Source: Macrostomum lignano
Lineage: Eukaryota
DNA length: 64,000 nt
Assembly: GCA_002269645.1 (NCBI GenBank)
Contig: NIVC01000996.1
Location: forward strand, 186,001-250,000
Direction of reading: 5' to 3'
Positions 9,801 through 57,947 of the stretch are shown here, one piece after another. Numbering within the stretch: the stretch's first letter is position 1; every line of letters begins with the position of its first letter. The translations under genes were made by a program, and so were the position numbers. The notes under the pieces were generated by a model. The model saw nothing but the letters and a program-made list of their open reading frames with translations, had not been told where the DNA came from and ran no database searches.

Positions 9801-12489
9801 AGGCCCAGAAATTTCAGCAAACTTCAATCGCACAAAAGCAACACATACAGGTACAGTGCAATAACGGTCTAGCATTGAGCAACAAGCACTGCTGAGACAG
9901 TCAGAGCAGACAGGTCTGACAGGACAATGGCTAGGGGTCCTGAATTGCCGTATGAGAAGCAGCAGAAGTTAAAGGGGGGAGAGGGCTTATCATATTCAAA
10001 CCCACGATACAATTTGGCAAGCTCTTTCAAGTCGCACCCTAACTTCTATCTTATCTTATTGAATAGCTCAAATAGAACTGCTGCATCTGGAGAGTGAGAG
10101 AGAGAGAGAGATGGAGCTTTTATTTTGATATTTCTATTTTCTCATCTACCTGCTTCTTTCCCTGCCAGAAATTGTCAGAAGTTGTTGTCAAGCCGTTGCG
10201 AGAGGTCTTGGAAATTAAAGAAAAAGGCAATTGTATATTGGGCAATTGTGGGCACTGGTAGAGATAAAGCTAAGGCGCTGTGTGACTCAAACTCTCTCGC
10301 TTGTTTTGTTCTGCGCTGACTCTGACTTGACTATAGGCTGACTGACTGAGTCACGTTGGCAGCTCTGCGTCACGATGTTTGCCCCGGGTTTTTTTTAGTT
10401 TCATATCGGGTTACAGGTGAATTTATGGCTATGTTAGCCTCTGTGTGAAGCTTGTGCACAGGTGTGAATGCTGAATTCCCTGTTATGCACAGGTGTGAAT
10501 GCTGAATTCCCTGTTATGCACAGGTGTGAATGCTGAATTCCCTGTTATGCACAGGTGGGAATGATGAAAAGATCCTGTTATGCACAGGTGTGAATGATAA
10601 ATTCCCTGTTATGCACAGGTGGAAATGATGAATAGATCCTGTTATGCACAGGTGTGAATGATAAATTCCCTGTTATGCACAGGTGTGAATGATAAATTCC
10701 CTGTTATGCACAGGTGTGAATGATGAATTCCGTGTTATGCACAGGTGTGAATGATGAATTCCCTGTTATGCACAGGTGTGAATGCTGAATTCCCTGTTAT
10801 GCACAGGTGTGAACGCTGAATTCCGTGTTATGCACAGGTGTTAACGCTGAATTCCCTGTTATGCACAGGTGTGAATGATGAATTCCCTGTTATGCACAGG
10901 TGTGAATGCTGAATTCCCTGTTATGCACAGGTGTGAACGCTGAATTCCGTGTTATGCACAGGTGTGAATGATGAATTCCCTGTTATGCACAGGTATGAAT
11001 GCTGAATTCCCTGTTATGCACAGGTGTGAATGCTGAATTCCCTGTTATGCACAGGTGTGAATGCTGAATTCCCTGTTATGCACAGGTGTGAATGCTGAAT
11101 TCCCTGTTATGCACAGGTGTGAATGCTGAATTCCCTGTTATGCACAGGTGTGAATGCTGAATTCCCTGTTATGCACAGGTGTGAAGCAAGGACCACTAGG
11201 AACACTTCGTTATAGAACACACTAGTCTAGTAGTCCTTGGTGTTAAAATTCAGTGTTTTCAGGTTTCCGAACGCACAAGTTTTGCACTTGTTCAAGTACA
11301 TCATGTACTCACCTTCCCTGCTCATGCCAACCCGCAGGCAGGAGCTCAGCCGGCACGCTCGGCACTGATTTCGCAAATTGCGATCGATATGACACTCATT
11401 GATGACTAATCCGCCAGTATTAGCCTCTGTACCGCTTCCGTCTTTGTTTGTTAAAAAATTTTTCGCTTTACACACGTACTTGTGCTGGCGGCGCACCGAT
11501 CGCTTGAAGAAGCCGGCGCATCTAAAAGACAAAATGCACTTTAAATTGGAGAGAGTACATAAACAGAGAGAAAGGCTCTTAATGTACTGCGGACCGAGGA
11601 TTAAAATTATATTGTGTGAGAGAAAGGCGGTTAGGTTGACCGAGGATAAAAAGTACATTGGGAGAGAGAGAAAGTCAGACTGAACGAGGATTAAAAGTAC
11701 ATTGGGAGAGAGAAAAAGAAGGTCAGACTGACCGAGGATTAAAAGTACATTAAGAGAGAGAGAAAGTCAGACTGAACGAGGATTAAAAGTACATTGGGAG
11801 AGAGACAAGGAAGGTCAGACTGACTGATGATTAAAAGTACATTAGAAGAGAGAAAGAGGGTCAGACTGACCGAGGATTTAAAGTACATTGGTAGAGAGAG
11901 AAAATAGGTCAGCCTGACATCGATACATCGATTAAAAGTACATTGATTCAGATTTACCCATCGCAGGCGTAGACTCCGTAATGCTTTCCGCTGCTGAAAT
12001 CGCCGCAAACTTCGCATGGAACGTCCGCAAGAATTCGGCCTGTTAATATATTGGTTGTTGGAGGCGGTTCAGTCAGATGTCAGTTTGGATGTCAGTGAGT
12101 GCTTCAACTCTGGTGTCATGGGGCTCTAATCTGTGAGTCAGTAGGGCTCTAATCTGTGAGTCAGTAGTGCTCTAATCTGTGAGTCAGTAGGGCTCTAATC
12201 TGAGTCAGTAGGGCTTTCATCTGTGTCAGTAGGGCTCTAATCTTTGAGTCAGTAGGGCTCTAATCTGTGAGTCAGTAGGGCTCTAATCTGTGAGTCAGTA
12301 GGGCTCTAATCTGAGTCAGTAGGGCTCTAATCTGGATAATTAGCGGTGCCAGAACCGGGGCATGCAGGGCCGCACAACTGTGCACTTACTGGAACTGACA
12401 TTGGCCCCGCTGCTCCTAGTCCCAGAAGTGGACACAAAAGCCCGGGACGAGCTGCTAGAAGCTGGTGAACGACTTCTTGACGAGTCCAT
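6889..12489 (-). CDS. tlx: Tailless/TLX (NR2E) nuclear receptor, 5 exons: 12489-12390, 12039-11958, 11521-11313, 8692-8135, 7157-6889; 405 aa
   Basis: Spliced product reads [39 protein letters not shown]...[23 protein letters not shown]. The P-box CDGCAG is tll-type. The LBD has RLLF/W..., '[12 protein letters not shown]', 'RFGRLLLLL' and an AF-2-like LVVDMF. All junctions are GT-AG and phase-consistent (1218 nt total). Confidence 0.93.
7330..8122. repeat. 14-bp purine-rich array (GAAGGGAGAGAGAT)n in tlx intron 4
   Basis: Direct reading; begins about 12 nt from the donor at 8134. Confidence 0.93.
8750..9790. repeat. 21-bp minisatellite (GAGTGAGACTCAGAGA[T/A]CTAG)n with longer variants, tlx intron 3
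   Basis: Direct reading. The unit is a multiple of 3, which explains the spurious RSRSETQ and RLRDLGV ORFs. Confidence 0.95.
10452..11184. repeat. 31-bp minisatellite (CACAGGTGTGAATGCTGAATTCCCTGTTATG)n, tlx intron 3
   Basis: Direct reading, about 23 units, each carrying a CAGGTG E-box. Confidence 0.95.
11620..11910. repeat. Degenerate array of about 45 bp (GACTGACCGAGGATTAAAAGTACATT...), tlx intron 2
   Basis: Recurring GGATTAAAAGTACATT blocks. Confidence 0.8.
12121..12333. repeat. 23-bp minisatellite (GTAGGGCTCTAATCTGTGAGTCA)n, tlx intron 1
   Basis: Direct reading, about 9-10 units; contains TGAGTCA and TAATCT. Confidence 0.92.
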
Positions 12490-13047: not shown

Positions 13048-13118
13048 GCATCGGTGGTTCAGTGGTAGAATGCTCGCCTGCCACGCGGGCGGCCCGGGTT
13101 CGATTCCCGGCCGATGCA
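13048..13118 (+). tRNA. trnG-GCC: tRNA-Gly (anticodon GCC)
   Basis: GCATCGG/CCGATGC acceptor stem, A box TGGTTCAGTGG, anticodon GCC at 13080-13082, B box GGTTCGATTCC; 71 nt, followed by T-runs (Pol III terminator). Confidence 0.97.
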
Positions 13119-13848: not shown

Positions 13849-14152
13849 GGGGAAATTGCAGCCTAGTGGTTAGAGTGTCGGACTCACGACTTGAAGGTCG
13901 GAGGTTCGATTCTCGATCCCACTTGGAACAATTGTGTCCTTGAGCAAGACACTTAACTCTGCATTGCTTCAGTTCACCCAGCTGTAAAATGGGTGCCAGC
14001 ATTAGCTGGGGGTAATTGAAGGGTGTGTGGCGACCCCCCAGTCCTTGGACTGAACAGCCGTCGCAGCCTTCAGATGCGCTGCGCAATAGCTGCGGTTGAG
14101 CTGTCGGTTGCACATCTGGCCATTAGGACAGGTGTAATCAATTATAATTATT
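13849..14152 (+). mobile_element. tRNA-derived CORE-type SINE, copy 1
   Basis: A box TAGTGGTTAGAG and B box GGTTCGATTC, then GTGTCCTTGAGCAAGACACTTAAC...CAGCTGTAAAATGGG, matching the MIR/CORE consensus. Tail ends CAGGTGTAATCAATTA(TAAT)n. Homologous copies at 42634-42937 and 44221-44520. Confidence 0.88.
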
Positions 14153-14499
14153 AATGTTTGATGAAAAAACCGACAAAATAAGACAAAAATCGAAACTTCA
14201 CTTAAGATTTCCAGATTAATTACTCAGATTAGGTTTAAAAAAGCATTCTACATTTTGTGTTCTTTAGCAGAAGAACATCAACGTACGTCATAACACTACA
14301 TATTTAAGTGAAAAATTGAGCTAGTCAGTAGAAGCGCTAAATTATTTATTGTTCAGCTTGTCAGTGACAAATAATATTAATCGTACTGTTACAGCTGTGT
14401 CGGACGGAAAGAAATCACTTGTGACAGCGCCAGAGCAAAAGAACAAAGCAATGGGATATTTTTTATCATAATATAAAGCGGATTTTCTACAAGAGATTG

Positions 14500-15135
14500 T
14501 ACAGGGAATCCCTGTTGCATAGTTCTGGATTTCCCACTTTAGATTGGAGGGGAATCTCAGTTGTATACTTAGGGGATTTTCCACTCTAAATAGGGAGGGG
14601 AATCCCCGTTATATAGTTAGGGATTTCCTAGCCTAGATTAGGAGGGGAACCCCCGTTACATAGTTGGAGATTTCCCACTCTAGATTAGGAGGGGAATCCC
14701 AGTTGTATAGTTCGGGAGTTCCCATTTTAAGTAGGGAGGGAAATCATCGTTGCATAGTTGGGGATTTCCCTCTCTAGATGGGGAGGGAAATCCCAGTTGT
14801 ATAGTTTGGGATATCCCACTCTAGATGGAGAAGGGGAATCCCAGTCGTATACTTAGGGATTTCACACTCTAAATAGGGAGGGGAATCCTCGTTGAATAGT
14901 TGGGGATTTCCCACTCTAGATGGGGAGGGAAATCCCAGTTGTATACTTAGGGATTTCCCACCTTAAATAAGGAGGGAATCCCAGTTGCATAGTTTGGGAA
15001 TTCCCACTCTAGATGGAGAGGGGAATCCCAGTCGTATACTTAGGGATTTCCCACATTAAATAAGGAGGGAATCCCAGTTGCATAGTTTGGGAATTCCCAC
15101 TCTAGATGGAGAGGGGAATCCCAGTCGTATACTTA
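14500..15135. repeat. Degenerate array of about 59 bp (..GGGGAATCCCAGTCGTATACTTAGGGATTTCCCACTCTAGA..) starting at the stop codon of the NEF1-like gene
   Basis: Direct reading; the last unit fragment CCCAGTCGTATACTTAG overlaps the TAA stop at 15133-15135. Confidence 0.88.
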
Positions 15136-18100
15136 GTCATTAAGCGAAGCAAACGACGCCCGCAGCATGTCAATTAAAAAGTCGGCATAATTCTCGGCTA
15201 GAAAATCCGACCCCAACAACAGCGTAGCAACGGACAGACAGACAGCCTGCAGACTGGACGCCATCAAGACAATTAAACACACAGGCAGTGGCAGGATGAT
15301 CAGGGCGATAAACAATGGCGTTAAGTCGTCATCGTTTCTTAGTCTCAGGCTGGAATAAAGACGGCCGCTGCCACTGCTGCTCTTATTGTTAGAAAAGATT
15401 CTACCATAGAGACTGACAAGAGGCCAACGGATTTCCGCAACGGAAGCAATATCGCCGCTTCCATCTTCCATAGAGGAGCCATTGTCGCAGTCCAGAGCCA
15501 GACTGCACAAGATGAAGTGCAACGGCAGCTGGCCCAAGCAGAGGGCGCACTCCAGCAGGCCTACCAAACGGTTCCACCAATTTGAATTGTCCAAGTCGTC
15601 AATTCCGTAGAAATCTACCGAATATAGGGCGGCCACCTGGCAGCTGAGCAGCTGGGCGATGAGGAACGGAGCCTGGGAGCGAGGGCCCAGCCAAGCCAGT
15701 AAAAGCACTGGCAGGGCCAGAGACTGCAATTTTTTTTAAGAAAAACAGGTGAAAACTTCATCAGATCAACATTTTACAACGAAGTTGTTTAAGTAGTGAG
15801 GTGACAACATTGAATAGCACTCTGAGCAGATTAATTTTTTTGTTTTTAATATAATTTGAAGTATTATTGACACTCCAACATTTTGCCAGCCAGGCATCTA
15901 CCAGCCAGACATTTTGCCAGCCAGGCATCTACCAGCCAGACATTTTGCCAGCTAGGCATCTATTTCCCAGCCAGACATTTTGCCAGCTAGGCATCTATTT
16001 CCCAGCCATACATTTTGCCAGCTAGGCATCTATTTCCCAGCCATACATTTTGCCAGCTAGGCATCTATTTCCCAGCCAGACATTTTGCCAGCTAGGCATC
16101 TATTTCCCAGCCAGACATTTTGCCAGCTAGGCATCTCCCAGCCAGACATTTTGCCAGCCAGGCATCTACCAGCCAGACATTTTGCCAGCTAGGCATCTAC
16201 CAGCCAGACATTTTGCCAGCCAGGCATCTACCAGCCAGACATTTTGCCAGCTAGGCATCTACCAGCCAGACATTTTGCCAGCTAGGCATCTACCAGCCAG
16301 ACATTTTGCCAGCTAGGCATCTACCAGCCAGACATTTTGCCAGCCAGGCATCTACCAGCCAGACATTTTGCCAGCTAGGCATCTATTTCCCAGCCAGACA
16401 TTTTGCCAGCTAGGCATCTATTTCCCAGCCAGACATTTTGCCAGCCAGGCATCTACCAGCCAGACATTTTGCCAGCTAGGCATCTACCAGCCAGACATTT
16501 TGCCAGCTAGGCATCTATTTCCCAGCCAGACATTTTGCCAGCTAGGCATCTACCAGCCAGACATTTTGCCAGCTAGGCATCTATTTCCCAGCCAGACATT
16601 TTGCCAGCCAGGCATCTATTTCCCAGCCAGACATTTTGCCAGCTAGGCATCTCCCAGCCAGACATTTTGCCAGCTAGGCATCTATTTCCCAGCCAGACAT
16701 TTTGCCAGCTAGGCATCTACCAGCCAGACATTTTGCCAGCTAGGCATCTATTTCCCAGCCAGACATTTTGCCAGCTAGGCATGTATTTCCCAGCCAGACA
16801 TTTTGCCAGCTATGCATCTATTTTCCAGCCAGACATTTTGCCAGCTAGGCATCTATTTCCCAGCCAAACATTTTGCCAGCTAGGCATCTTCCAGCCAGAC
16901 ATTTTGCCAGCTAGGCATCTTTTTCTCAGCCAGACATTTTGCCAGCTAGGCATGTATTTCCCAGCCAGACATTTTGCCAGCTATGCATCTATTTTCCAGC
17001 CAGACATTTTGCCAGCTAGGCATCTATTTCCCAGCCAAACATTTTGCCAGCTAGGCATCTTCCAGCCAGACATTTTGCCAGCTAGGCATCTTTTTCTCAG
17101 CCAGACATTTTGCCAGCTAGGCATCTTTTTCTCAGCCAGACATTTTGCCAGCTAGGCATCTATTTCCCAGCCAGACATTTTGCCAGCTAGGCATTTACCA
17201 GCCAGACATTTAGCCAGCTGCTAATGGTCCAACCAGCGACAAAAAAGCATAAATTTGAGCAATTTTTTTTATTTTACACAGCAAATTTATCTAGCAAAAC
17301 GCATACAACCTACTTGAGCGTGAGTAGTGTCATACATAGTGTCACAAAAACAAAAACGCTAGGAAAAACTTACAATGGCATTGTCCAACGGATTCCAACA
17401 GCCCAACAGCAACAGACAGTAGGCAATAGATAACAAACCATTGAAAAGCAGTTCTTCAATTGCCAATTTTTGTGTTAGTTGAACCAAATCCGGATTTGAC
17501 TGTTAACGAAATTATAGAGAAAAAAATCGATATGAAAAATCATAATTAAAGCAATAATAATATTACCATCTATACTAAAATATTTTACCTTTGCAAGGTA
17601 GTAAAGCCACCTACAGGCTGCCAACTGGTGCAAAACTACTATTAGAGAAAGTGTGAACGAAGACCAGCTTGGCAGTAGTAGTTGGTGCAATCCAGCTAGT
17701 AGTATCACGCAGGCAAAGCTGGAAAAATTTAATTTGACAGACAAAAAATGTCACAATGCAGATGAGGTAAACATTGTATGAATTACAGAAAGCAGAAACT
17801 CACAGAGCAACTGCTGGTTTAAACAGTTTATCGGCACTGATGTTTCCGCACAGAGACAGAGCGAAACTTGACGATATGCTGATGGAGCCAACCAGTGCGA
17901 TGCCAGCTTGATACGACACGAGCGAAGGGTCGAACTGAGCGAGGGGAATAGATAGGAGTCTGATGAAAATACATGACAGTTGAGCGGAATGAGGATCTGA
18001 GAGGCTGGCCCAGCAACTGAGGATCTGGGAGGCTGGCCTAGCAACTGAGGATCTGAGAGGCTGGCCCAGCAACTGGGGATCTGGGAGGCTGGCCTAGCAA

Positions 18101-21100
18101 CTGAAGATCTGGGAGGCTGGCCCAGCAACTGAGGATCTGGGAGGCTGGCCCAGCAACTGAGGATCTGGGAGGCTCGGCTGGCCCAGCAACTGAGGATCTG
18201 GGAGGCTGGCCCAGCAACTGAGGATCTGAGAGGCTGGCCCAGCAACTGAGGATCTGGGAGGCTGGCCCAGCAACTGAGGATCTGGGAGGCTGGCCCAGCA
18301 ACTGTGGATCTGGGAGGCTGGTCCAGCAACTGAGGATCTGAGAGGCTAGCCCAGCAACTGAGGATCTGGGAGGCTGGCCCAGCAACTGAGGATCTGGAAG
18401 GCTGGCCCAGCAACTGAGGATCTGGGAGGCTGGCCCAGCAACTGAGGATCTGGGAGGCTGGCCCAGCAACTGAGGATCTGAGAGGCTGGCCCAGCAACTG
18501 AGGATCTGGGAGGCTGGCCCAGCAACTGAGGATCTGGGAGGCTGGCCCAGCAACTGAGGATCTGGGAGGCTGGCCCAGCAACTGAGGATCTGAGAGGCTG
18601 GCCCAGCAACTGAGGATCTGGGAGGCTGGCCCAGCAACTGAGGATCTGGGAGGCTGGCCCAGCAACTGAGGATCTGGGAGGTTGGCCCAGCTACAGTTAA
18701 ACAGGCAACTCACCACAGTGAAGTAGAGCAGCAGATGCTGACAGGTCAAACCGATGCAGAGAATTACACTCCAGCTGACTTTAGAGGAAATTTTGGATTT
18801 GTTAAGCCAGGCTAACAAATAAACAGACACCACAGCCACAAGCTGAGCTGCCGAAACGATTAGCCTACAAAATACGAGCATTAGAATAAGTTATTAAGGC
18901 TTAATTAGGTAAAAATTATTTCAGTTTAAGAACAGTTTCAATTCTTTACCTGACATTGGAGCTAACAAATGGGATTATATCGTTACGAACTAATCCCAGC
19001 GCTAATGCAGCAGTGCCAGATGAAATTGTTATTAATTTTATCGCAGTCCAATGCGGTGCAAACAGACTTTTGCAATGCAATACCGAGCACAATAGTAGAC
19101 AGAGAACTGCAAAATAGAATTAGACGATATGTATCGAAAAAACGCTAAAAGTATTGATTACTCTTTTACTCACCTATTAACTCAGCCAGATCCAGCTGCC
19201 TATCAAAGATGCTGTTAGCTATCGAAGATAGAATTGAATTGCGTATGCAAACTAATAGGACAGCCACCGACAGAAAAGATGCAATTGGCTGTTGAAAAAA
19301 GTTGTGAAAATGATATTAAATATTCTTACTATGCTACTTAACGGTAGAGTACTATGATAAATATTTTAGCTTTATTTGTTAAAATTTTGATTCTCGAAGC
19401 CTGGGGTCTGGGGAGTGATGGAGCGGAGAGGCTGATTCTCCAAGGAGTCTGAGGGAGTGATGGAGCGGAGAGGCAGATTCTCAAGGATTCTGGGGGAGTG
19501 ATGGAGCGGAGAGGCTGATTCTCCAAGGAGTCTGAGGGAGTGATGGAGCGGAGAGGCAGATTCTCAAGGATTCTGAGGGAGTGATGAAGCGGAGAGGCAG
19601 ATTCTCCAAGGAGTCTGAGGGAGAGATGAAGCGGAGAGGCAGATTCTCAAGGATTCTGAGGCAGTGATGGAGCGGAGAGGCAGATTCTCAAGGAGTCTGA
19701 GGGAGTGATGGAGCGGAGAGGCTGATTCTTTAAGGAGTCTGAGGGAGTGATGGAGTGGAGAGGCAGATTCTTCAAGGAGTCTGAGGGAGTGATGGAGCGG
19801 AGAGGCAGATTCTCAAGGAGTCTAAAGGGAGTGATGGAGCGGAGAGGCAGATTCTCAAGGATTCTGAGGGAGTGATGGAGCGGAGAGGCAGATTCTCAAG
19901 GAGTCTGAGGGAGTGATGGAGCGGAGAGGCTGATTCTTTAAGGAGTCTGAGGGAGTGATGGAGCGGATAGGCAGATTCTCCAAGGAGTCTGAGGGAGTGA
20001 TGGAGCGGAGAGGCAGATTCTCAAGGAGTCTGAGGGAGTGATGGAGCGGATAGGCAGATTCTCCAAGGAGTCTGATGGAGTGATGGAGCGGAGAGGCAGA
20101 TTCTTCAAGGAGTCTGAGGGAGTGATGGAGCGGATGGGCAGATTCTCCAAGGAGTCTGAGGGAGTGATGGAGCGGAGAGGCAGATTCTCAAAGTGTCTGA
20201 GGGAGTGATGGAGTTGAGAGGCTGATTCTCAAGGATTCTGAGGGAGTGATGGAGCGGAGAGGCAGATTCTCAAGGAGTCTGAGGGAGTGATGGAGCGGAT
20301 AGGCAGATTCTCAAGGAGTCTGATGGAGTGATGGAGCGAAAAGGCAGATTCTCAAGGAGTCTGAGGCAGTGATGGAGCGGAGAGGCAGATTCTCAAGGAG
20401 TCTGAGGGAGTGATGGAGCGGAGAGGCAGATTCTCAAGGAGTCTGAGGGAGTGATAGAGCGGAGAGGCAGATTCTCAAAGTGTCTGAGGGAGTGATGGAG
20501 TTGAGAGGCAGATTCTCAAGGATTCTGAGGGAGTGATGGAGCGGATAGGCTGATTCTCCTCGGAGTCTGAGGGAGTGATGGAGCGGAGAGGCAGATTCTC
20601 AAGGAGTCTGAGGGAGTGATGAAGCGGAGAGGCAGATTCTCAAGGATTCTGAGGGAGTGATGGAGCGGAGAGGCAGATTCTCAAGGAGTCTGAGGGAGTG
20701 ATGGAGCGGAGAGGCTGATTCTTTAAGGAGTCTGAGGGAGTGATGGAGCGGAGAGGCAGATTCTTCAAGGAGTCTGAGGGAGTGATGGAGCGGAGAGGCA
20801 GATTCTCAAGGAGTCTAAAGGGAGTGATGGAGCGGAGAGGCAGATTCTCAAGGATTCTGAGGGAGTGATGGAGCGGATAGGCAGATTCTCAAGGAGTCTG
20901 AGGGAGTGATGGAGCGGAGAGGCTGATTCTTTAAGGAGTCTGAGGGAGTGATGGAGTGGATAGGCAGATTCTCCAAGGAGTCTGAGGGAGTGATGGAGCG
21001 GAGAGGCAGATTCTCCAAGGAGTCTGAGGGAGTGATGGAGCGGATAGGCAGATTCTCCAAGGAGTCTGATGGAGTGATGGAGCGGAGAGGCAGATTCTTC

Positions 21101-24100
21101 AAGGAGTCTGAGGGAGTGATGGAGCGGATGGGCAGATTCTCCAAGGAGTCTGAGGGAGTGATGGAGCGGAGAGGCAGATTCTCAAAGTGTCTGAGGGAGT
21201 GATGGAGTTGAGAGGCTGATTCTCAAGGATTCTGAGGGAGTGATGGAGCGGAGAGGCAGATTCTCAAGGAGTCTGAGGGAGTGATGGAGCGGATAGGCAG
21301 ATTCTCAAGGAGTCTGATGGAGTGATGGAGCGGAGAGGCAGATTCTCAAGGAGTCTGAGGCAGTGATGGAGCGGAGAGGCAGATTCTCAAGGAGTCTGAG
21401 GGAGTGATGGAGCGGAGAGGCAGATTCTCAAGGAGTCTGAGGGAGTGATAGAGCGGAGAGGCAGATTCTCAAAGTGTCTGAGGGAGTGATGGAGTTGAGA
21501 GGCAGATTCTCAAGGATTCTGAGGGAGTGATGGAGCGGATAGGCTGATTCTCCTCGGAGTCTGAGGGAGTGATGGAGCGGAGAGGCAGATTCTCAAGGAG
21601 TCTGAGGGAGTGATGGAGCGGATAGGCAGATTCTCCAAGGAGTCTGAGGGAGTGATGGAGCGGAGAGGCAGATCCTTCAAGGAGTCTGAGGGAGTGATGG
21701 AGCGGATAGGCAGATTCTCCAAGGAGTCTGAGGGAGTGATGGAGCGGATAGGCTGATTCTCCTCGGAGTCTGAGGGAGTGATGGAGCGGAGAGGCAGATT
21801 CTCCAAGGAGTCTGAGGGAGTGATGGAGCGGAGAGGCAGATTCTCAAGGAGTCTGAGGGAGTGATGAAGCGGAGAGGCAGATCCTTCAAGGAGTCTGAGG
21901 GAGTGATGGAGCGGATAGGCTGATTCTCCTCGGAGTCTGAGGGAGTGATGGAGCGGAGAGGCTGATTCTCCTCGGAGTCTGAGGGAGTGATGGAGCGGAG
22001 AGGCAGATTCTCCAAGGAGTCTGAGGGAGTGATGGAGCGGATAGGCAGATTCTCCAAGGAGTCTGAGGGAGTGATGGAGCGGAGAGGCAGATTCTCCAAG
22101 GAGTCTGAGGGAGTGATGGAGCGGATAGGCAGATTCTCCAAGGAGTCTGATGGAGTGATGGAGCGGAGAGGCAGATTCTCCAAGGAGTCTGATGGAGTGA
22201 TGGAGCGGAGAGGCAGATTCTCCAATGAGTCTGATGGAGTGATGGAGCGGAGAGGCAGATTCTCATAGAACAGAGATCCGCAGAGGCTCACCAAAGCCAA
22301 TTTTCGCTGATCAACAAAGAACCCATGGTTCGAAGGGAGTGTCCACAGCAGCCAGACAGCCTGCAGGCACAGAAGCCACAGACCAGCAACGGAAACGTGA
22401 GGAAAAATTTCTCGCTCCTCAGCGCCAGCTAGACGATGCGTTGCTAGGAGCAAGCAGCGGGTAGCAACAGTTGCTAAGTGAACAGATTTAACATTCGTAG
22501 GCAGCTTGGATTCCGGCAGTCTTGAAAAATTGAAGATTTGATGAACAATTATTATGATGCGCGAGGTGCTTTATAAATAATATCAATAAAAGAATATTAT
22601 TGGTATGAGTTGCGGGCTGAGGGAGGGTAGTCAGACATGCACATCCCAGTTGAAAACGTTATCGTGACAAGAATCGTTAAAGAGTCATTGCAAACAATGA
22701 ACTATTGTTTAATATTTCTACTATTTTTAAGGCTATTTATAACCCCCTATTTACAAGCCCCAAATGATTATAGACGCGCATTAACCCCGAGGAGGTTCGT
22801 GGCGGGGGAGAGTCAGACGCATTTACTCCTGAGAACAAAAGTACATAGATAATTAAATTTTACAACTTACTTTAATAGAGCCGCATTGACCAAACACGAA
22901 AATAGCAATACGACTTGATAAGGCGAATAGCCCAACAGATAGAAATTCCATTCGCAGTAGAAAAATGCTGCAATTAACAAAAAATAACAAAAAGCGCGTA
23001 TCAATATTTCGAACTACTAACAGTAGACAAAAGTAAACAAACTGCTAAATATTCTACAAAAGGCAACTAACCAATTAAAAATGCAGAAAATGCCACGGCA
23101 AACAGGTAGCCACTTTTTAGAGACGAACTTCGTCCAAAGGACGATCGGTCCCTCTTTGACAGCAGAAGAAACAGCAACGGAGCCAAGGCTGTAGCAAATA
23201 GAATGCTGGCAAATTGCCGCTGAGTTAAAGTTGGATCCCACATTGAATACCTGCGGAGAATGCAAGATTAAGCTACGTTACAAGCTATTTGTTGTTGTTA
23301 AACGAGGGTGGGTAGCCAGGGGCTCCCGCGGATCAGCCCAGGGAAGGGCTCTGCCGCTGAATATAAGGGGGCACATCTACCAGGGTCACAGCCCGAGCAG
23401 CCCAGATTGGGACCTGACTTCATGGCCAGAGAGAGAAAACTAATTGGGGCTACTAGCTCAAGCCTATGGACTAAGACACCGCTGACCAACAGTGGAATCA
23501 GGGACGGTGCTAGGACCGAGTCCACTCAGGCAGGCCACCCACCCAGCAGACAAATCCCGGGGCCGGGAGTGCGCGAAAAAAGATTGGAAAATTTTCGAAA
23601 CACTACTGAAAGCGGTCCGATAGCGGGGAGACCCGAAGTCTACGGAAATGGCTCAATTTTGGAGCGAATCTGGGCAGCTTATTACCAAGGGCGAGACTCC
23701 TATCAGGTATGCATTTGGTCCGAGAGAGGAATTATCCTAGTCCACGGAAAGGGGCCAGGCCAAGGGTTCGGAGAGGGGCACAAGGAGCAAGAGGAACCCG
23801 GACTCAGCCGGTATTCCCCAATTCGGGACGAACTCATTCCCCAGGACTCCAATCCACTGTCAGCGATAATAAGCAGGGAGACAACCAGCGGAGCCAGCAG
23901 ATGGACCAAGACAAAGCAAGATAGACCAGGCAGGGAGGGCAGAGCTCATAACTCCAGAACATTGGATGGCTACAAAGCCGGGGATAAAACACAAAGCTAA
24001 AAGTACAAGGGGATAAAACAAAAATGGGAGGAGCACCTGAACCCTAAACCTGGGGCTCAGCCTCAGGGCTGGCATCAACTAGGCTCTACCGTACACTTTT

Positions 24101-27100
24101 GTGAATGGTCGTCTGGGCTCTACCGTACACTTTTGTGAATGGCCGTCTGGGCTCTACCGTACACTTTGTGAATGGTCGTCTGGGCTCTACCGTACACTTT
24201 TGTGAATGGTCGTCTGGGCTCTACCGTACACTTTTGTGAATGGTCGTCTGGGCTCTACCGTACACTTTTGTGAAAGGTCGTCTTTCCTGCAGGGCGGGTG
24301 CGACCGGGGGGGGGGCTCAAGTCCCGTTCTAGCCACACTTGCAGTCCAGAATTCCAACTCTTTCATTCCAACAACTCACGTTACAAGCTATTTACAGTAG
24401 GATGAATGCATATTGTGCCGCGACTGACAAAAAGAACATTTATAATTGACTTTTTTTAATGAATTTTTTCGCGTTGCCGCCTCCCTCAAGAAATGCCCAC
24501 AAACCCTCCTCCCACCCTTAAAGCAACCAAATTGATTTCTGTTGACTATTTATGTTGCATCTTGAGCTGTAGGAAAACTTCAAATGCGCCGCGCAATAGC
24601 TGCGGCTGAGCTGTCGGTTGCAAATCTATCTATTAAGGCAGGTGTAATCAATTACTAATATTATCATCTGTTTGCTAAGTTCTGCGTCTGTCATATCCAT
24701 ATCTATCTAATGAAGCCTAGTTTCTATGGTGGATAGATACAACTGTAGAAAGAATTAATCGTGCGCCTAAATCTTCAAATTGACTGTTCCACAGTCCCCA
24801 TTGCTGGCTAATAAGCAGCTTTGCTGACCATTCGGCAGACAGTTGAAATCACAACAACATTTTTCTAATTTACATTAAAATAAACATAACTATCTACTTA
24901 TCTATCTAACTTAATCTAACTATCTTGACTAAATCTAACTATCTACAGCCCCCGATACTTTTATGTAAAAAATACAAAAATGTACATGACTCAAACTTTA
25001 GGCTTACTGAATCTTCCAGGGAAACAGAAACACCTGAGCAGCGAAGGCCAGAGCGCCGATGATGCCGCAGAGCCAGCCAGCCAGCCGGCTAAACAGACCG
25101 ATCGAACCGCCGGCTTCCCTGCCTAGCAACACGGCAGACACAGCAGCCAGAGCAGCCGGAGGCCCCGTATAAAAGTGCAGCCTCATACCGTGAGCCTGCA
25201 TTGCCGGGGTCAGCAGAAGGGCAGCCGATATCAGACTTACATCGCGAATGAGTCCGCCAGGATCTCTAATCGATGCGGGCAGAGCAACGGCCGCTTCGTC
25301 AACTAGAGATGAGTTAACAGTTAGTGTAATAAAACATAATGTTGTTTATGCAGTTTCCCTGCCCTGATATTTCATATTTTTGAAAAGATTAACCCTAATC
25401 CTAATCCTAAACTTATGAAGATATGAAGTGTCGGAGATATGAAGTGTCGGAGATATGAAGTGTCGGAGATATTAAGTGTCGAAGATATGAAGTGTCGAAG
25501 ATATGAAGTGTCGTAGATATGAAGTGTCGGAGATATGAAGTGTCGGAGATATGAAGTGTCGAAGATATGAAGTGTCGAAGATATGAAGTGTCGTAGATAT
25601 GAAGTGTCGGAGATATGAAGTGTCGGAGATATGAAGTGTCGGAGATATGAAGCGTCGGAGATATGAAGTGTCGGAGATATGAAGTGTCGGAGATATAAAC
25701 TGTCGGAGATATGAAGTGTCGGTGATATGAAGTGTCGGAGATATGAAGTGTCGCAGATATGAAGTGTCGGGGATATGAAGTGTCGGGGATATGAAGTGTC
25801 GGGGATATGAAGTGTCGGAGATGTGAAGTGTCGGATAGATGAAGTGTCGGAGATATGAAATGTCGGAGATAAGAAGTGTCGGAAATATACGGAGATATAA
25901 AGTCGAAGGAATTCTTATATTGCTAGAAAAGCCAAAGTTTTATACTCAAATTATCAAAATCCTGTCCTTAAAAATCTACATTGAAAATCTTTTGGTTGAT
26001 AAAATTAAAACGTTTAAAAAGGTAAAATCTGTAACTCACTATAGTGTTTAATCAGCTGTTGAAGTCCTAAAAAGTTGGATGCCAGTCCGCAGAGGCTGAT
26101 TAAAAAGAATAGTTCCAACTGAAAATATTTTAAAATAATTAAAATATGAGGTAGATCACAAACAATGCTGTTTATAGAGTGGAGGATAGACAGGGGAATT
26201 CAATGTACACCCGAGTCTATAGAGTAGAGGATAAACAAGGGGATCAAATGTACACCCGAGTCTATAGAGTAGGGGATAAACAAGGGGAATCAAATGTACA
26301 CCCGAGTCTATAGAGTAGGGGATAAACAAGGGGAATCAAATGTACACCCGAGTCTATAGAGTAGAGGATAAACAAGGGGAATCAAATGTACACCCGAGTC
26401 TATAGAGTAGGGGATAAACAAGGGGAATCAAATGTACACCCGAGTCTATAGAGTAGGGGATAAACAAGGGGAATCAAATGTACACCCGAGTCTATAGAGT
26501 AGGGGATAAACAAGGGGAATCAAATGTACACCCGAGTCTATAGAGTAGGGGATAAACAAGGGGAATTCAATGTACACCCGAGTCTATAGAGTGGAGGATA
26601 GACAGGGAGAATCCGATGTACACTCTGAGTATGTAGAGTGGGGTATAGACAGGGGGAATCCAATGTACACTCTGAGTATGTAGAGTGGGGTATAGACAGG
26701 GAGAATCCTATGTACACCCGAGTCTGTAGAGTAGAGGGTAGACAGGGAGAATCCAATGTACACTCTAGTATGTAGAGTGGAGTATAGACAGGGGATTCTC
26801 CCTGTCTATCCCATGTACATTAAATAAACAAATGAAATGAAAAACACGATGCGCATACCAGTTTATCCCCATCAAGCAGAGACATTAGAGAGGCGCTCAT
26901 GACGGCGTGTTTAACAAGAAAAACGAACACGGTGGCAACGAAAACGATAGCAACAATGATGCAGTGAACTTCGGCAGCATACTTGGACTCTTTAGTGTTC
27001 CGAATCTCGGGGTCGGTGATGTAAACACGGTACTGAACGAAACTGGAGTGTTTTTGTTAGATACATGATTTTTAAACAATGGAACTACTAAGTTATAAAA

Positions 27101-30100
27101 TAATTACCTAGCAAAATTACCTGATACAAAGTATATAATAAGGCAGATATTCAATTCCGTATATGGTAGTTAGGAACCAACTGCAGATACCGGTTGCTAA
27201 GCCAGGCAGCAAGCAGTAGCCAAATATCCTCAGACCCTCCTGGGGGAAATTAACAACTTGCAAATATTAATGGAAAGCACTAATTTCTATTAATAGAAAT
27301 TTGACATAAAAACTCACATCAAACAATACTCCTGGACCAATTAATGCTTGCAAATCAACAGACTCGTCAAGTATAACCCACATGACTGACACGACGACAA
27401 AGAAGTGGAAACAGATGAACAATAGAATGTAGAACAATGACTGCCTGTGAGGATAGAAAAAATATACTACTTTGAGTAAGTTATAAAACCGCTGAAAATT
27501 ATTGTAATCATAATCATGTAAAAGCTAATTACTCAAATATCAGTGATCAATTCAGTCACTGACTCACTGCTAAACTAATCAATCTGAATCAGTGACTATT
27601 TGATCAATTCAGTCACTGACTCACTGCTAAACTAATCAATCTGAATCAGTGACTATTTGATCAATTCAGTCACTAACTCACTGCTAAACTAATCAATCTG
27701 AATCAGTGACTATTTGATCAATTCAGTCACTGACTCACTGCTAAACTAATCAATCTGAATCAGTGACTATTTGATCAATTTAGTCACTGACTCACTGCTA
27801 AACTAATCAATCTGAATCAGTGACTATTTGATCAATTTAGTCACTGACTCACTGCTAAACTAATCAATCTGAATCAGTGACTATTTGATCAATTCAGTCA
27901 CTGACTCACTGCTAAACTAATCAATCTGAATCAGTGAATATTTGATCAATTCAGTCACTGACTCACTGCTAAACTAATCAATCTGAATCAGTGACTATTT
28001 GATCAATTCAGTCACTGACTCACTGCTCAACTAATCAATCTGAATCAGTGACTATTTGATCAATTCAGTCACTGACACTGACTCACTGCTAAACTAATCA
28101 ATCTGAATCAGTGACTATTTGATCAATTCAGTCACTGACTCACTGCTAAACTAATCAATCTGAATCAGTGACTATTTGATCAATTCAGTCACTGACTCAC
28201 TGCTAAACTAATCAATCTGAATCAGTGACTATTTGATCAATTCAGTCACTGACTCACTGCTAAACTAATCAATCTGAATCAGTGACTATTTGATCAATTC
28301 AGTCACTGACTCACTGCTAAACTAATCAATCTGAATCAGTGACTATTTGATCAATTCAGTCACTGACTCACTGCTAAACTAATCAATCTGAATCAGTGAC
28401 TATTTGATCAATTCAGTCACTGACTCACTGCTAAACTAATCAATCTGAATCAGTGACTACTTGATCAATTCAGTCACTGACTCACTGCTAAACTAATCAA
28501 TCTGAATCAGTGACTATTTTATCAATTCAGTCACTGACTCACTGCTAAACTAATCAATCTGAATCAGTGACTATTTGATCAATTCAGTCACTGACTCACT
28601 GCTAAACTAATCAATCTGAATCAGTGACTATTTGATCAATTCAGTCACTGACTCACTGCTAAACTAATTAATCTGAATCAGTGACTATTTGATCAATTCA
28701 GTCACTGACTCACTGCTAAACTAATCAATCTGAATCAGTGACTATTTGATCAATTCAGTCACTGACTCACTGCTAAACTAATCAATCTGAATCAGTGACT
28801 ATTTGATCAATTTAGTCACTGACTCACTGCTCAACTAATCAATCTGAATCAGTGACTATTTGATCAATTCAGTCACTGACTCACTGCTAAACTAATCAAT
28901 CTGAATCAGTGACTATTTGATCAATTTAGTCACTGACTCACTGCTAAACTAATCAATCTGAATCAGTGACTATTTGATCAATTCAGTCACTGACTCACTG
29001 CTAAACTAATCAATCTGAATCAGTGACTATTTGATCAATTTAGTCACTGACTCACTGCTAAACTAATCAATCTGAATCAGTGACTATTTGATCAATTCAG
29101 TCACTGACTCACTGCTAAACTAATCAATCTGAATCAGTGACTATTTGATCAATTCAGTCACTGACTCACTGCTAAACTAATCAATCTGAATCAGTGACTA
29201 TTTGATCAATTTAGTCACTGACTCACTGCTAAACTAATCAATCTGAATCAGTGACTATTTGATCAATTCAGTCACTGACTCACTGCTAAACTAATCAATC
29301 TGAATCAGTGACTATTTGATCAATTCAGTCACTGACTCACTGCTAAACTAATTAATCTGAATCAGTGACTATTTGATCAATTCAGTCACTGACTCACTGC
29401 TAAACTAATTAATCTGAATCAGTGACTATTTGATCAATTCAGTCACTGACTCACTGCTAAACTAATCAATCTGAATCAGTGACTATTTGATCAATTCAGC
29501 AGTGTTGGGCAAGTTACTCAAAAAAAGTAACTTGCGTTACTGTAACTTAAGTTACCACTTTTTAAAAAGTAACTTACGTTAGCCTAGTAACTTTGAACAA
29601 AAACCCGGTAACTTTTAAGTTACTTCCGTTACTTACTTCCGTTACCTATGTTATTAACAAAATTTTCTGCTTTTTTTAACATTGCAAATGTGATGGAACA
29701 GCACAAATGATCGCGAAAGCCAGGAGGAAGAATACAACAACATTAATTTCAGTAACTGTATTAAATTTTAATCACTTTAGGCCCTTTCCGTAAAAAGAAG
29801 AGAAGCTGAAGGTCAGAAACGTTAAAGGCAAAACGCAATTTAATTTTTAATAACATTATAAGTTATAATACACAAGGACAACTTAACGTAACTTCAGTTG
29901 TCCTTGATAATACATCGCTCGTAATAAGTATCTGGCTTTACTCCACTCTACAGTCTGCTTTACTAGTATTTTTATTTATTTTCAATTATTATCATTAATA
30001 TTAAATTATTGTGCAGTGCAGTGCAGTGCCAGTGGACTTTAGTGGTGTAGCCAGGGAGGCCGCCTTAACAATCGTTGGGGCGGCAACTTCACCCCACCTG

Positions 30101-33100
30101 CAAGACACCCCACCTGGGGGGTGGGGTTGGGCGTGGCGGGTACCAAAAACCATGAGGCGATTTGAGTGCCTGCGGCGCTTAAATGAGTGCCTGCGGCGCT
30201 TAAATAAGTGCTTGCGGCGCTAAAATGAGTGCCTGCGGCGCTAAAAGTGGCAATAACATGAGGCATGGCCAGCCAGGCCAACCCGCCCCCCCCCAATTAA
30301 AATTCCTGGCTACGTCGATCACTGAGTGGATTTGTGGAGACTACAGATGAATTTCTTTCTTTGGTTGTTTGTTTCTAAGAACTAAACAAAATATTTTTAT
30401 TAACTTAAAAACGAAAAGCAAAAATATTTTACCGAAAATAACAAAGTAAAAACATGTTTCAAGTATTTCTTTATTAATTACAGCGTAATACCGTATGATA
30501 TTATTCACTTAGTTTTGAATTTAGGAATGAAAAATGCTAAAAATGTGACAACTGGCGTAATAGCTAAGCATATCAGTTTTAAATTTAAATATTGCGATTG
30601 TTGCAAAGTAACTGTAACGGACTTCCGAAATTTGAGTAACTTACCGTTACTCCGTTACCAAAATAGGAAAGTAACTTGCGTAAGGAACGCTTTACGAAAA
30701 AGTAACTTGCGTTACCATTTACAAGTTACTCGGTAACGGAAGTGCCCAACACTGCAATTCAGTCACTGACTCACTGCTAAACTAATCAATCTGAATCAGT
30801 GACTATTTGATCAATTTAGTCACTGACTCACTGCTCAACTAATCAATCTGAATCAGTGACTATTTGATCAATTCAGTCACTGACTCACTGCTAAACTAAT
30901 CAATCTGAATCAGTGACTATTTGATCAATTTAGTCACTGACTCACTGCTAAACTAATCAATCTGAATCAGTGACTATTTGATCAATTCAGTCACTGACTC
31001 ACTGCTAAACTAATCAATCTGAATCAGTGACTATTTGATCAATTCAGTCACTGACTCACTGCTCAACTAATCAATCTGAATCAGTGACTATTTGATCAAT
31101 TTAGTCACTGACTCACTGCTAAACTAATCAATCTGAATCAGTGACTATTTGATCAATTCAGTCACTGACTCACTGCTAAACTAATCAATCTGAATCAGTG
31201 ACTATTTGATCAATTCAGTCACTGACTCACTGATAAACTAATCAATCTGAATCAGTGACTATTTGATCAATTCAGTCACTGACTCACTGCTAAACTAATC
31301 AATCTGAATCAGTGACTATTTGATCAATTTAGTCACTGACTCACTGCTCAACTAATCAATCTGAATCAGTGACTATTTGATCAATTCAGTCACTGACTCA
31401 CTGCTAAACTAATCAATCTGAATCAGTGACTATTTGATCAATTCAGTCACTGACTCACTGCTAAACTAATTAATCTGAATCAGTGACTATTTGATCAATT
31501 CAGTCACTGACTCACTGCTAAACTAATTAATCTGAATCAGTGACTATTTGATCAATTCAGTCACTGACTCACTGCTAAACTAATCAATCTGAATCAGTGA
31601 CTATTTGATCAATTCAGTCACTGACTCACTGCTAAACTAATCAATCTGAATCAGTGACTATTTGATCAATTTAGTCACTGACTCACTGCTCAACTAATCA
31701 ATCTGAATCAGTGACTATTTGATCAATTCAGTCACTGACTCACTGCTAAACTAATCAATCTGAATCAGTGACTATTTGATCAATTCAGTCACTGACTCAC
31801 TGCTAAACTAATTAATCTGAATCAGTGACTATTTGATCAATTCAGTCACTGACTCACTGCTAAACTAATTAATCTGAATCAGTGACTATTTGATCAATTC
31901 AGTCACTGACTCACTGCTAAACTAATCAATCTGAATCAGTGACTATTTGATCAATTCAGTCACTGACTCACTGCTAAACTAATCAATCTGAATCAGTGAC
32001 TATTTGATCAATTTAGTCACTGACTCACTGCTCAACTAATCAATCTGAATCAGTGACTATTTGATCAATTCAGTCACTGACTCACTGCTAAACTAATCAA
32101 TCTGAATCAGTGACTATTTGATCAATTTAGTCACTGACTCACTGCTAAACTAATCAATCTGAATCAGTGACTATTTGATCAATTCAGTCACTGACTCACT
32201 GCTAAACTAATCAATCTGAATCAGTGACTATTTGATCAATTCAGTCACTGACTCACTGCTCAACTAATCAATCTGAATCAGTGACTATTTGATCAATTTA
32301 GTCACTGACTCACTGCTAAACTAATCAATCTGAATCAGTGACTATTTGATCAATTCAGTCACTGACTCACTGCTAAACTAATCAATCTGAATCAGTGACT
32401 ATTTGATCAATTCAGTCACTGACTCACTGATAAACTAATCAATCTGAATCAGTGACTATTTGATCAATTCAGTCACTGACTCACTGCTAAACTAATCAAT
32501 CTGAATCAGTGACTATTTGATCAATTTAGTCACTGACTCACTGCTCAACTAATCAATCTGAATCAGTGACTATTTGATCAATTCAGTCACTGACTCACTG
32601 CTAAACTAATCAATCTGAATCAGTGACTATTTGATCAATTCAGTCACTGACTCACTGCTAAACTAATTAATCTGAATCAGTGACTATTTGATCAATTCAG
32701 TCACTGACTCACTGCTAAACTAATTAATCTGAATCAGTGACTATTTGATCAATTCAGTCACTGACTCACTGCTAAACTAATCAATCTGAATCAGTGACTA
32801 TTTGATCAATTCAGTCACTGACTCACTGCTAAACTAATCAATCTGAATCAGTGACTATTTGATCAATTTAGTCACTGACTCACTGCTCAACTAATCAATC
32901 TGAATCAGTGACTATTTGATCAATTCAGTCACTGACTCACTGCTAAACTAATCAATCTGAATCAGTGACTATTTGATCAATTTAGTCACTGACTCACTGC
33001 TAAACTAATCAATCTGAATCAGTGACTATTTGATCAATTCAGTCACTGACTCACTGCTAAACTAATCAATCTGAATCAGTGACTATTTGATCAATTCAGT

Positions 33101-33936
33101 CACTGACTCACTGCTCAACTAATCAATCTGAATCAGTGACTATTTGATCAATTTAGTCACTGACTCACTGCTAAACTAATCAATCTGAATCAGTGACTAT
33201 TTGATCAATTCAGTCACTGACTCACTGCTAAACTAATCAATCTGAATCAGTGACTATTTGATCAATTCAGTCACTGACTCACTGCTAAACTAATCAATCT
33301 GAATCAGTGACTATTTGATCAATTCAGTCACTGACTCACTGCTAAACTAATCAATCTGAATCAGTGACTATTTGATCAATTCAGTCACTGACTAACTAGT
33401 TTATTAATCAATATTAAAAAATCTATCAACATTATCAATTCAATTAATTAATTCAAAATCAAGGACACAAAGCTTAAAACACAGTTGATGTCCTTACCCA
33501 ATTAGTGAAAGAATGGTCACAATAATATGCAATTCAATCAGAACACCAATAAAAAATCCTGCTCCAACGGTTCTGCAAAGATAAAAAAATAGTTTTTGTA
33601 ACATATCAAAAATAAAAGTTACTTCTTAGATAATTTAGAACTTACACTTGATAATGCTTCTTAGCTATCAGCTTTGCCATGTAGAGAAGGGTATACAAAA
33701 ATATAATCCTAAAAAGTTAAAAATTTTTAATTTCAAATTAACTATAGAAATTCTATAACTATAAAGACATTTTCAACAAGATCAACTTACCGTTGGCCAC
33801 ATGTCTCTGCCAAGCAGAGAACAGTTGGCACAATTGACAAGCCAATTTGTCTAGGAAAAAATGAAATTGTCATGGTTTGTGCCTTGAACAATTCTATTTT
33901 AGATGGTTTAAAACTTCTAGCTGAAAATATTGGCAT
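15133..33936 (-). CDS. Polytopic membrane protein resembling plant NO EXINE FORMATION 1 (NEF1-like), 18 exons, about 997 aa
   Basis: Exons 33936-33791, 33708-33646, 33572-33498, 27444-27318, 27239-27121, 27042-26859, 26118-26040, 25302-25008, 23250-23072, 22967-22871, 22520-22292, 19288-19174, 19106-18950, 18864-18714, 17934-17804, 17718-17589, 17499-17374, 15723-15133. All junctions are GT-AG, phase-consistent and stop-free (2994 nt). More than 20 hydrophobic segments by eye. The gene structure is well supported; the NEF1 assignment rests on comparison with a recalled Arabidopsis sequence (about 0.65). Confidence 0.85.
15876..17220. repeat. 27/31-bp minisatellite (GCCAGACATTTTGCCAGCTAGGCATCTA[TTTC]CCA)n, last intron of NEF1-like gene
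   Basis: Direct reading. Confidence 0.95.
17996..18690. repeat. 28-bp minisatellite (GGCTGGCCCAGCAACTGAGGATCTGGGA)n, intronic
   Basis: Direct reading; three units give the 28-aa peptide repeat seen in the ORF track. Confidence 0.95.
19405..22265. repeat. 41/42-bp minisatellite (GAGGGAGTGATGGAGCGGAGAGGCAGATTCTC[C]AAGGAGTCT)n, intronic, with a block duplication of about 1 kb
   Basis: Direct reading; the rare variant AAAGTGTCTGAGGGAGTGATGGAGTTGAG recurs near 20190/20478 and 21184/21472. Confidence 0.95.
23291..24377 (-). mobile_element. Retroposon-like insertion with 16-bp TSD and (AAC)n tail, containing a 34-bp x about 6 minisatellite
   Basis: ACGTTACAAGCTATTT occurs at 23275-23290 and 24378-24393. 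GTTGTTGTT sits at the left end, giving a minus-strand tail. Internal GGCTCTACCGTACACTTTTGTGAATGGTCGTCTG repeats at 24082-24282. No recognisable protein. Confidence 0.65.
24583..24665 (+). mobile_element. 3' tail fragment of the CORE-SINE family (or its partner LINE)
   Basis: ATGCGCCGCGCAATAGCTGCGGCTGAGCTGTCGGTTGCA...CAGGTGTAATCAATTA matches the SINE 3' ends at about 14075-14145 and 44440-44510. Confidence 0.8.
25418..25890. repeat. 16-bp minisatellite (GATATGAAGTGTCGGA)n, intronic
   Basis: Direct reading. Confidence 0.95.
26175..26800. repeat. 46-bp minisatellite (GAGTCTATAGAGTAGGGGATAAACAAGGGGAATCAAATGTACACCC)n, intronic
   Basis: Direct reading; CACCCG recurs at 26253 and 26299. Confidence 0.93.
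29500..30754. mobile_element. Non-autonomous hAT-type DNA transposon (1255 bp)
   Basis: TIRs CAGTGTTGGGCA / TGCCCAACACTG; perfect 8-bp TSD CAATTCAG (29492-29499, 30755-30762); dense subterminal GTAAC/GTTAC motifs; no ORF. Confidence 0.92.
30039..30325. mobile_element. Small MITE nested in the hAT element
   Basis: Imperfect TIRs AGTGGTGTAGCCAGG / CCTGGCTACG..CACTG; near-TSD AGTGGACT / AGTGGATT; GC-rich island with internal TGCCTGCGGCGCT repeats. Confidence 0.6.
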
Positions 33937-42633: not shown

Positions 42634-42937
42634 ATAATTGATTACACCTACCCCAATGGGCAGGTGTTCAACCGACAGCTCAGCCGCAGCTATTGCGCTG
42701 CGCAGCTGAAGGCTGCGCACGGCTCTTCAGTCCAGTCCAAGGACTGATGGGTTGCTGCACACACCTTCAATTACCCCAGCTAATGCTGCTGGCACCCATT
42801 TTGACAGCTGGGTGAACTGAAGCAATCCAGAGTTATGTGTCTTGCTCAAGGACACAAATTATTTCGAGTAGGATCGGGAATCGAACCCACCATTCAAGTC
42901 GTGCGACGGACGCTCTAACCACTAGGCTAAAATCCCC
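42634..42937 (-). mobile_element. CORE-type SINE, copy 2
   Basis: Reverse complement of copy 1 features: A box, B box (GGTTCGATTCC), GTGTCCTTGAGCAAGACAC, AAAATGGGTGCCAGC and the same tail. Confidence 0.88.

Positions 42938-45723: not shown

Positions 45724-54906
<9,183 letters not shown>

Positions 54907-57533: not shown

Positions 57534-57947
<414 letters not shown>

Follow-up and report, generated by a model that had tools for sequence, protein, structure and literature searches.

An intact 18-exon gene for a large polytopic membrane protein in the flatworm Macrostomum lignano, with a weak end-to-end resemblance to plant NEF1

The stretch of DNA analysed here, a window of 64,000 nucleotides (nt) of the flatworm Macrostomum lignano (contig NIVC01000996.1, positions 186,001 to 250,000, assembly GCA_002269645.1), carries on its minus strand an 18-exon gene, 33936..15133, that encodes a large polytopic membrane protein. 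This is a genuine animal gene, intact and under constraint, and its product is an orphan by ordinary search criteria. There is nevertheless a specific collinear resemblance, mostly N-terminal, between this protein and the plant protein NEF1 (NO EXINE FORMATION 1, At5g13390), which survived every control that we built. Such a weak and reproducible end-to-end resemblance suggests, without proof, a distant kinship. Because the collinear alignment with NEF1 is better than that of any control, the most likely reading is that the flatworm protein is very distantly related to the NEF1 family, having diverged extremely, or that it at least shares the same fold, to which we assign a probability of roughly 0.55.

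The gene structure (Table 1) was established by spliced alignment of BOX15_Mlig004664g2, a partial hypothetical protein of M. lignano, together with a splice-site scan. This protein was first recovered, as the one match, when a rough concatenation of hydrophobic open segments was compared with a protein collection. All 17 introns are of the GT..AG type, most donors being GTAAGT or GTGAGT, and the spliced exons amount to 2994 nt, that is, 997 codons and a stop, with zero internal stops. A preliminary description of this DNA, made from its letters, had proposed 18 GT-AG exons joined in one stop-free frame, and the spliced alignment agreed with it exactly in where the gene starts and ends and in the length of 997 residues. 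It was also right in that exons are missing from the list of open reading frames (ORFs), several being too short (the shortest exons measure 63-79 nt), and in describing the product as almost all transmembrane (TM), since a hydropathy scan gave between 18 and 27 hydrophobic cores of 19 residues, according to the threshold set, and the helices number roughly 22-27. Leucine makes up 19% of the protein. Only two hydrophilic loops exist, at residues ~174-206 and ~878-940; the other loops are short, a soluble domain is absent, and a search for internal repeats in the protein found none. The GenBank model begins at codon 8 of the 997-residue frame; after codon 1, the first ATG in frame is codon 22. 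In the segment 33900-33936 (minus strand), codons 3-7 contain acceptor-like sites (TATTTTCAG and CTAG). If the mRNA is trans-spliced to a spliced leader at these sites, translation may in truth begin at Met22 (33873) and yield 976 residues.

Over 990 residues, the window protein is 100% identical to GenBank PAA73729.1 (hypothetical protein Mlig004664g4), and two more M. lignano loci encode proteins with 8 and 31 residue differences from it. The GenBank annotation of this assembly was built from assemblies of RNA sequencing (RNA-seq) reads with StringTie/TACO, TBONE and TransDecoder (PMC5730564), and for this reason the exon junctions have indirect transcript support. This is a functional, transcribed M. 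lignano gene, locus Mlig004664.g4, and one of at least three near-identical loci that stem from recent genome duplication. The sister locus L001 (NIVC01001643.1) has kept 18 of the 18 exons. Coding differences between it and the window comprise 16.5 synonymous and 8.5 nonsynonymous changes, a per-site ratio (pN/pS) of 0.17, and this low value, while the tandem arrays in the introns vary several-fold, shows that the coding sequence is under purifying selection. The short introns of the two loci are 0.65% diverged (7 of 1085 positions), below the 2.2% of exon synonymous sites, and intron 8 is 99.8% identical; this low divergence may be due to gene conversion in patches or to noise from small numbers. 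The neighbouring nuclear receptor, G protein-coupled receptor (GPCR), Kelch, ionotropic glutamate receptor and destabilase genes place it in an animal genome.

Conventional searches with the flatworm protein returned no Pfam family (E≤10) and no relative among the sequences of the PDB. An exhaustive phmmer search over 1.84 billion representatives retrieved nothing beyond the protein itself and an M. lignano fragment 96% identical to it, a word-indexed search with the exact 997-residue protein (E≤10) returned only BOX15_Mlig004664g2, and neither of these protein searches found an animal or protist relative outside M. lignano. For the comparison with NEF1, a NEF1-like probe sequence was validated by the database proteins that it retrieved (296, with identities of up to 97%). 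‘No exine formation 1’ is the name of many among the 120 matches listed, and every NEF1 test used these database sequences. The NEF1 motifs given in the preliminary description do occur in real NEF1 proteins. NEF1 itself belongs to no Pfam family, and its profile found no PDB relative.

The best hhalign alignment joined flatworm residues 23-241 to NEF1 residues 67-297, the region of the first motifs singled out in the preliminary description, and because of this coincidence global alignment scores were measured against nulls of rising stringency. With BLOSUM62, the mean global score of the flatworm protein against 31 NEF1 orthologues was -19. Null scores were -98 ± 23 for 7-residue window shuffles (z 3.4, with 0 of 100 decoys reaching the real score), -82 ± 20 for 4-residue window shuffles (z 3.1, 0/60), -141 ± 17 for circular rotations (z 7.3, 0/70), about -87 to -92 when TM cores were permuted (z 3.5-3.9, 0/60 each) and about -97 when only the loops were shuffled (z 4.0, 0/60). 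Permuting the TM cores and reversing the loops gave -126 ± 15 with BLOSUM62 (z 7.2, 0/250) and z values of 5.3 with BLOSUM45 (0/250) and 2.7 with PAM250, where 4 of 250 decoys reached the real score. A second test aligned the protein globally to a weighted 64-sequence NEF1 profile using our own Needleman-Wunsch code, which is not a community standard. The real score of -85 was reached by 0 of 740 decoys (z 3.2-8.1), the nulls being -213 ± 18 for architecture-preserving decoys (z 6.9, 0/200), -190 ± 27 and -174 ± 27 for 7- and 4-residue window shuffles (z 3.9 and 3.2, 0/200 each) and -243 ± 19 for rotations (z 8.1, 0/140). In this author-built test, the full-length collinear alignment beat nulls that preserve composition, hydropathy and architecture.

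In no negative control did |z| reach 1.9. Six chimeras of E. coli NuoH/J/K/L/M/N (994-1122 residues, 25-28 TM cores) scored z -1.4 to 0.8 against NEF1, the flatworm protein scored z 0.6-0.9 against the reversed NEF1 profile and -0.2 to 1.8 against the Nuo chimeras, and an unverified dolichol kinase sequence scored z ~0. When both proteins were cut into thirds and compared in a 3x3 design, only the cognate pairs carried signal (N-terminal z 3.8/5.5, middle 2.8/2.2, C-terminal 1.4/3.1), with off-diagonal cells between -2.8 and 1.8; the signal was clearest in the N-terminal third (first 330-400 residues). At NEF1 columns conserved in at least 98% of sequences, 84 of 264 residues were identical; the z value was 3.4 with rotations as the null, 2.6 with the architecture null, but only 1.0-1.5 with window shuffles. 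The preliminary description had listed collinear motif pairs, six of which were tested. The first two, RQIGLSIVP/RIAIALVP and LRIFGYCLLP../LERLLFACVP.., do lie on the optimal path.

The two proteins are also alike in layout. Both are almost all membrane, with >20 helices, no Pfam domain and no PDB relative. In each, a charged loop follows roughly the fourth helix, and a long hydrophilic loop precedes the final ones. Their best block, the hhalign region given above, matches NEF1 at P74, G84, F111, W158, P171, P186, G202, Y209 and P224. NEF1, which is found in land plants and green algae, is the longer of the two (~1120 residues), and the flatworm protein is without its 60-residue Ser/Pro-rich N-terminus and its ~100 C-terminal residues; identity to the NEF1 consensus is ~24%, barely over decoys. 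Within the NEF1 family itself, the homologue of Chlorella matches the Arabidopsis protein at only 69 bits (PMC4928020). The hosts differ as well, the flatworm being an animal without plastids. PMC3220415 and PMC12346373 describe NEF1 as a protein of plastid membranes, and both cite Ariizumi 2004 for the defects in lipid and sterol-ester accumulation in the tapetal plastids of the Arabidopsis nef1 mutant.

Several results weigh against kinship with NEF1. BLASTP against 120 NEF1 sequences gave a best E of 0.48 with non-collinear high-scoring segment pairs, and a hidden Markov model of 56 NEF1 sequences assigned -19.8 bits to the real protein, less than to decoys made by window shuffling. Local hhalign comparison reached a probability of 0.3% (score 21.4, decoys 20.8 ± 3.1), a second profile-profile comparison 0.23%, and hhalign -glob found nothing; no NEF1 was present among the phmmer hits. 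As NEF1 has no Pfam model, significant similarity in a standard search is the only operational definition of the family, and the flatworm protein shows none. The preliminary description had itself said that the lack of a significant full-length hit would refute its claim, and on this measure the claim fails, since none of BLASTP, phmmer, hmmsearch and hhalign returned such a hit. Its wider claim of collinear likeness from end to end fared in two ways, holding in the global-alignment tests with their clean negative controls and failing in every standard search. The remaining four motif pairs fell off the optimal path, by 9 score units for KLAIE/MLAIE, 15 for CIRNSI/CRETIF, 22 for YSPYQVVL/YPSYMVIL and 47 for LPLHFIL/APGHIIF. 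The C-terminal third was weak in the thirds test, and segment mapping was consistent for flatworm residues 100-530 only and inconsistent past 530. Optimised alignment brought decoys to ~23% identity and the real pair to 24-25%, and the identity at the most conserved columns was not significant against window shuffles (z 1.0-1.5). Full shuffles gave z 6-9, under the TCDB convention of 12-14 standard deviations. Intron positions, whose comparison the preliminary description had proposed, offer no help either: plant NEF1 has 3 introns (after residue 408, phase 0; at ~598, phase 2; after 672, phase 0) and the flatworm gene 17, none of the three plant positions coincides with a flatworm intron, and the nearest one (intron 13, phase 2) lies 2.3 codons from the third plant intron, within chance expectation. 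AlphaFold2 reached a predicted local distance difference test (pLDDT) of 40 when run on the flatworm protein as a single sequence and of 48 on NEF1 with 62 angiosperm sequences; models this poor are unfit for a comparison of folds, and Foldseek matches to them would be meaningless. Finally, our NEF1 profile covers land plants only, and the p-values carry an unknown selection effect, since NEF1 had been chosen in the preliminary description for its resemblance.

A metagenome scan with the NEF1 alignment recovered only land-plant loci, at 57-97% identity, with no algal, protist or animal intermediates; it added two sequences at 57-60% identity to the alignment and none more distant. Nothing on NEF1 outside plants or on ‘Mlig004664’ came up in searches of the literature.

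The strongest competitor to a diverged NEF1 relative, possible although in our judgement somewhat less probable, is that this is an unrelated, lineage-restricted polytopic membrane protein, orphan or very fast-evolving, whose likeness to NEF1 arises from architecture and local composition and was amplified when the preliminary description picked the best-looking match. The uniformly negative standard tools, the decoy identity so near to that of the real pair, the marginal identity excess at conserved NEF1 columns, the four stray motif pairs and the absence of common introns would all be expected of such a protein. It accounts less well for the fact that nulls keeping architecture, local composition and real helices were all exceeded, that z stayed near 0 both for the six unrelated polytopic controls and with the NEF1 profile reversed, and that the signal was confined to the diagonal of the thirds test. 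We consider it highly improbable that the gene was recently acquired from a plant or alga or is an assembly contaminant, the least credible of the alternatives. Apart from this case, NEF1 is known from the green lineage alone, and M. lignano is fed on diatoms. Against this, the gene sits between animal genes at two independent loci, with the nuclear receptor adjoining it at the sister locus also, a conserved synteny that together with the animal neighbours excludes contamination, and none of its 17 spliceosomal introns occupies one of the three plant positions; with identity to NEF1 at noise level, a transfer would have to be ancient.

Database names point elsewhere. UniProt automatic naming calls fragment or exon-skipped models of this gene ‘Dolichol kinase’ (A0A1I8G686) and ‘Pecanex-like protein’ (A0A1I8HJ63 and A0A1I8J9Q3). 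That the gene encodes a divergent member of either family is very unlikely, and the names probably reflect the false-positive assignment of a TM-rich protein to these families. They contradict each other for fragments of one protein, and both families are absent from the exhaustive phmmer hits. Pecanex (PCNX) is likewise a large multi-pass animal membrane protein, but neither Pecanex_C (PF05041) nor any other Pfam family was found at E≤10 for BOX15_Mlig004664g2 or at E≤1 for four related models. Membership of that family implies a Pecanex_C domain after the TM region and a length of >1500 residues; the flatworm protein, at 997, is under half the usual pecanex size of >2000 residues. Dolichol kinase (DOLK/SEC59, polyprenol kinase family) is likewise polytopic and of an endoplasmic reticulum-type membrane, with half the length of the flatworm protein. 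A short GD.(.)AS...EIRWP coincidence at residues 888-903, inside the second hydrophilic loop, matches the C-terminal motif region of human dolichol kinase. The kinase sequence used, taken to be the human one, was unconfirmed by Pfam, PDB or literature; as it was set down with knowledge of the flatworm sequence, the EIRWP match may be primed and is a lead only. This kinase sequence scored z 0.1 locally, -0.1 in glocal mode and 1.1 over the motif region, and the KTxEG part and the rest of the motif for binding cytidine triphosphate are missing from the flatworm protein.

The structure of the gene, the purifying selection on it, its animal surroundings and the statistical resemblance are shown by the data; homology to NEF1 is what we infer from the collinear alignments, and the functional proposal is weaker still. 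The flatworm protein could, more tentatively, sit in the endomembrane system or the plasma membrane. Our working guess is that it would move or otherwise handle a lipophilic substrate, acting in a non-plastid membrane as a transporter-like or lipid-handling protein, a guess drawn from the all-membrane architecture and the plant nef1 mutant phenotype only. The role in eggshell or gland lipid polymers put forward in the preliminary description was not supported.

Tandem Repeats Finder located tandem arrays in introns 3, 6, 7, 8, 11, 14 and 17, six of them large. The preliminary description was correct in placing arrays in the introns, and its count of five large ones was too low. Within the 18.8-kb gene span, arrays make up ~58% and coding sequence 16%. 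Array lengths in the window and in the sister locus are 6053 and 2525 nt for intron 3, 3003 and 1141 nt for intron 11, and 1650 and 514 nt for intron 17; with exons 99% identical, these several-fold differences imply that arrays expand and contract fast without upsetting splicing. The 57-bp array of intron 3 is split by a 1.1-kb insert (~29630-30750) that is neither array nor repetitive and that the sister locus lacks. Intron 8 also contains a 230-residue ORF without a Pfam match and an 86-nt dispersed repeat (~24578-24663). Related copies of this repeat, 80-90 nt long at 82-86% identity, occur at 14068-14153, 44422-44512 and 42635-42711, and it is possibly an element resembling short interspersed nuclear elements (SINEs) or miniature inverted-repeat transposable elements (MITEs). 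Further tandem arrays or low-complexity repeats surround the gene at 14504-15131, 53227-54318, 55641-56794, 57481-58119 and 63317-63989. These repeat-rich flanks fit the 15% share of simple and tandem repeats reported for the M. lignano genome (PMC5730564).

Table 1. Exons, intronic tandem arrays and neighbouring features in the 64,000-nt window (positions are those of the window)
Feature	Position	Strand	Description
Exon 1	33791..33936	-	146 nt; ATG 33936-33934; alternative in-frame ATG (codon 22) 33873-33871
Exon 2	33646..33708	-	63 nt
Exon 3	33498..33572	-	75 nt
Exon 4	27318..27444	-	127 nt
Exon 5	27121..27239	-	119 nt; codes for LRIFGYCLLP..SW..YG..YY, the best NEF1-like block
Exon 6	26859..27042	-	184 nt
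Exon 7	26040..26118	-	79 nt
Exon 8	25008..25302	-	295 nt
Exon 9	23072..23250	-	179 nt
Exon 10	22871..22967	-	97 nt
Exon 11	22292..22520	-	229 nt
Exon 12	19174..19288	-	115 nt
Exon 13	18950..19106	-	157 nt
Exon 14	18714..18864	-	151 nt
Exon 15	17804..17934	-	131 nt
Exon 16	17589..17718	-	130 nt
Exon 17	17374..17499	-	126 nt
Exon 18	15133..15723	-	591 nt including stop 15135-15133; codes for the final TM helices and the hydrophilic loop 878-940
Intron 3 array	27544..33397		57-bp unit, ~100 copies
Intron 6 array	26173..26778		46-bp unit
Intron 7 array	25419..25888		16-bp unit
Intron 8 array	24082..24283		34-bp unit, short
Intron 11 array	19406..22265		42-bp unit, ~69 copies
Intron 14 array	17990..18691		28-bp unit
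Intron 17 array	15878..17219		35-bp unit
Nuclear receptor exons (zf-C4, Hormone_recep) and rhodopsin-type GPCR	11227-11658, 7449-8567, 2335-3267	-	downstream, same strand as the gene
tRNA-Gly(GCC)	13048-13118	+	Rfam 66.7 bits, also ARAGORN; located between the 18-exon gene and the nuclear receptor downstream of it
Kelch-repeat protein	40104-41153	-	upstream neighbour
Destabilase (i-type lysozyme) exon	43855-44286	+	upstream neighbour
Ionotropic glutamate receptor exon	47969-48808	-	upstream neighbour
Ribonuclease H/reverse transcriptase-like retroelement fragment	52104-52670	+	upstream neighbour

For twenty years NEF1 has counted as a plant-specific protein whose biochemistry is unknown, the only functional handle being a male-sterile mutant with tapetal plastid lipid defects. 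If the resemblance is not homology, the flatworm gene still encodes a conserved, constrained orphan membrane protein of 1000 residues, and it also shows that the automatic UniProt names ‘Dolichol kinase’ and ‘Pecanex-like’ are unreliable. We regard as roughly an even bet the fuller proposal that the protein is a true diverged NEF1 homologue from an ancient eukaryotic family of giant polytopic proteins, detectable among animals only in the Macrostomum lineage, where it would work in a non-plastid membrane. If so, NEF1 would be the remnant of an ancient eukaryotic family and not a plant invention. A real animal relative would make the family older than plastids, would argue against a plastid-specific mechanism and would provide a second tractable system for this fold, as RNA interference and transgenesis are available in M. 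lignano.

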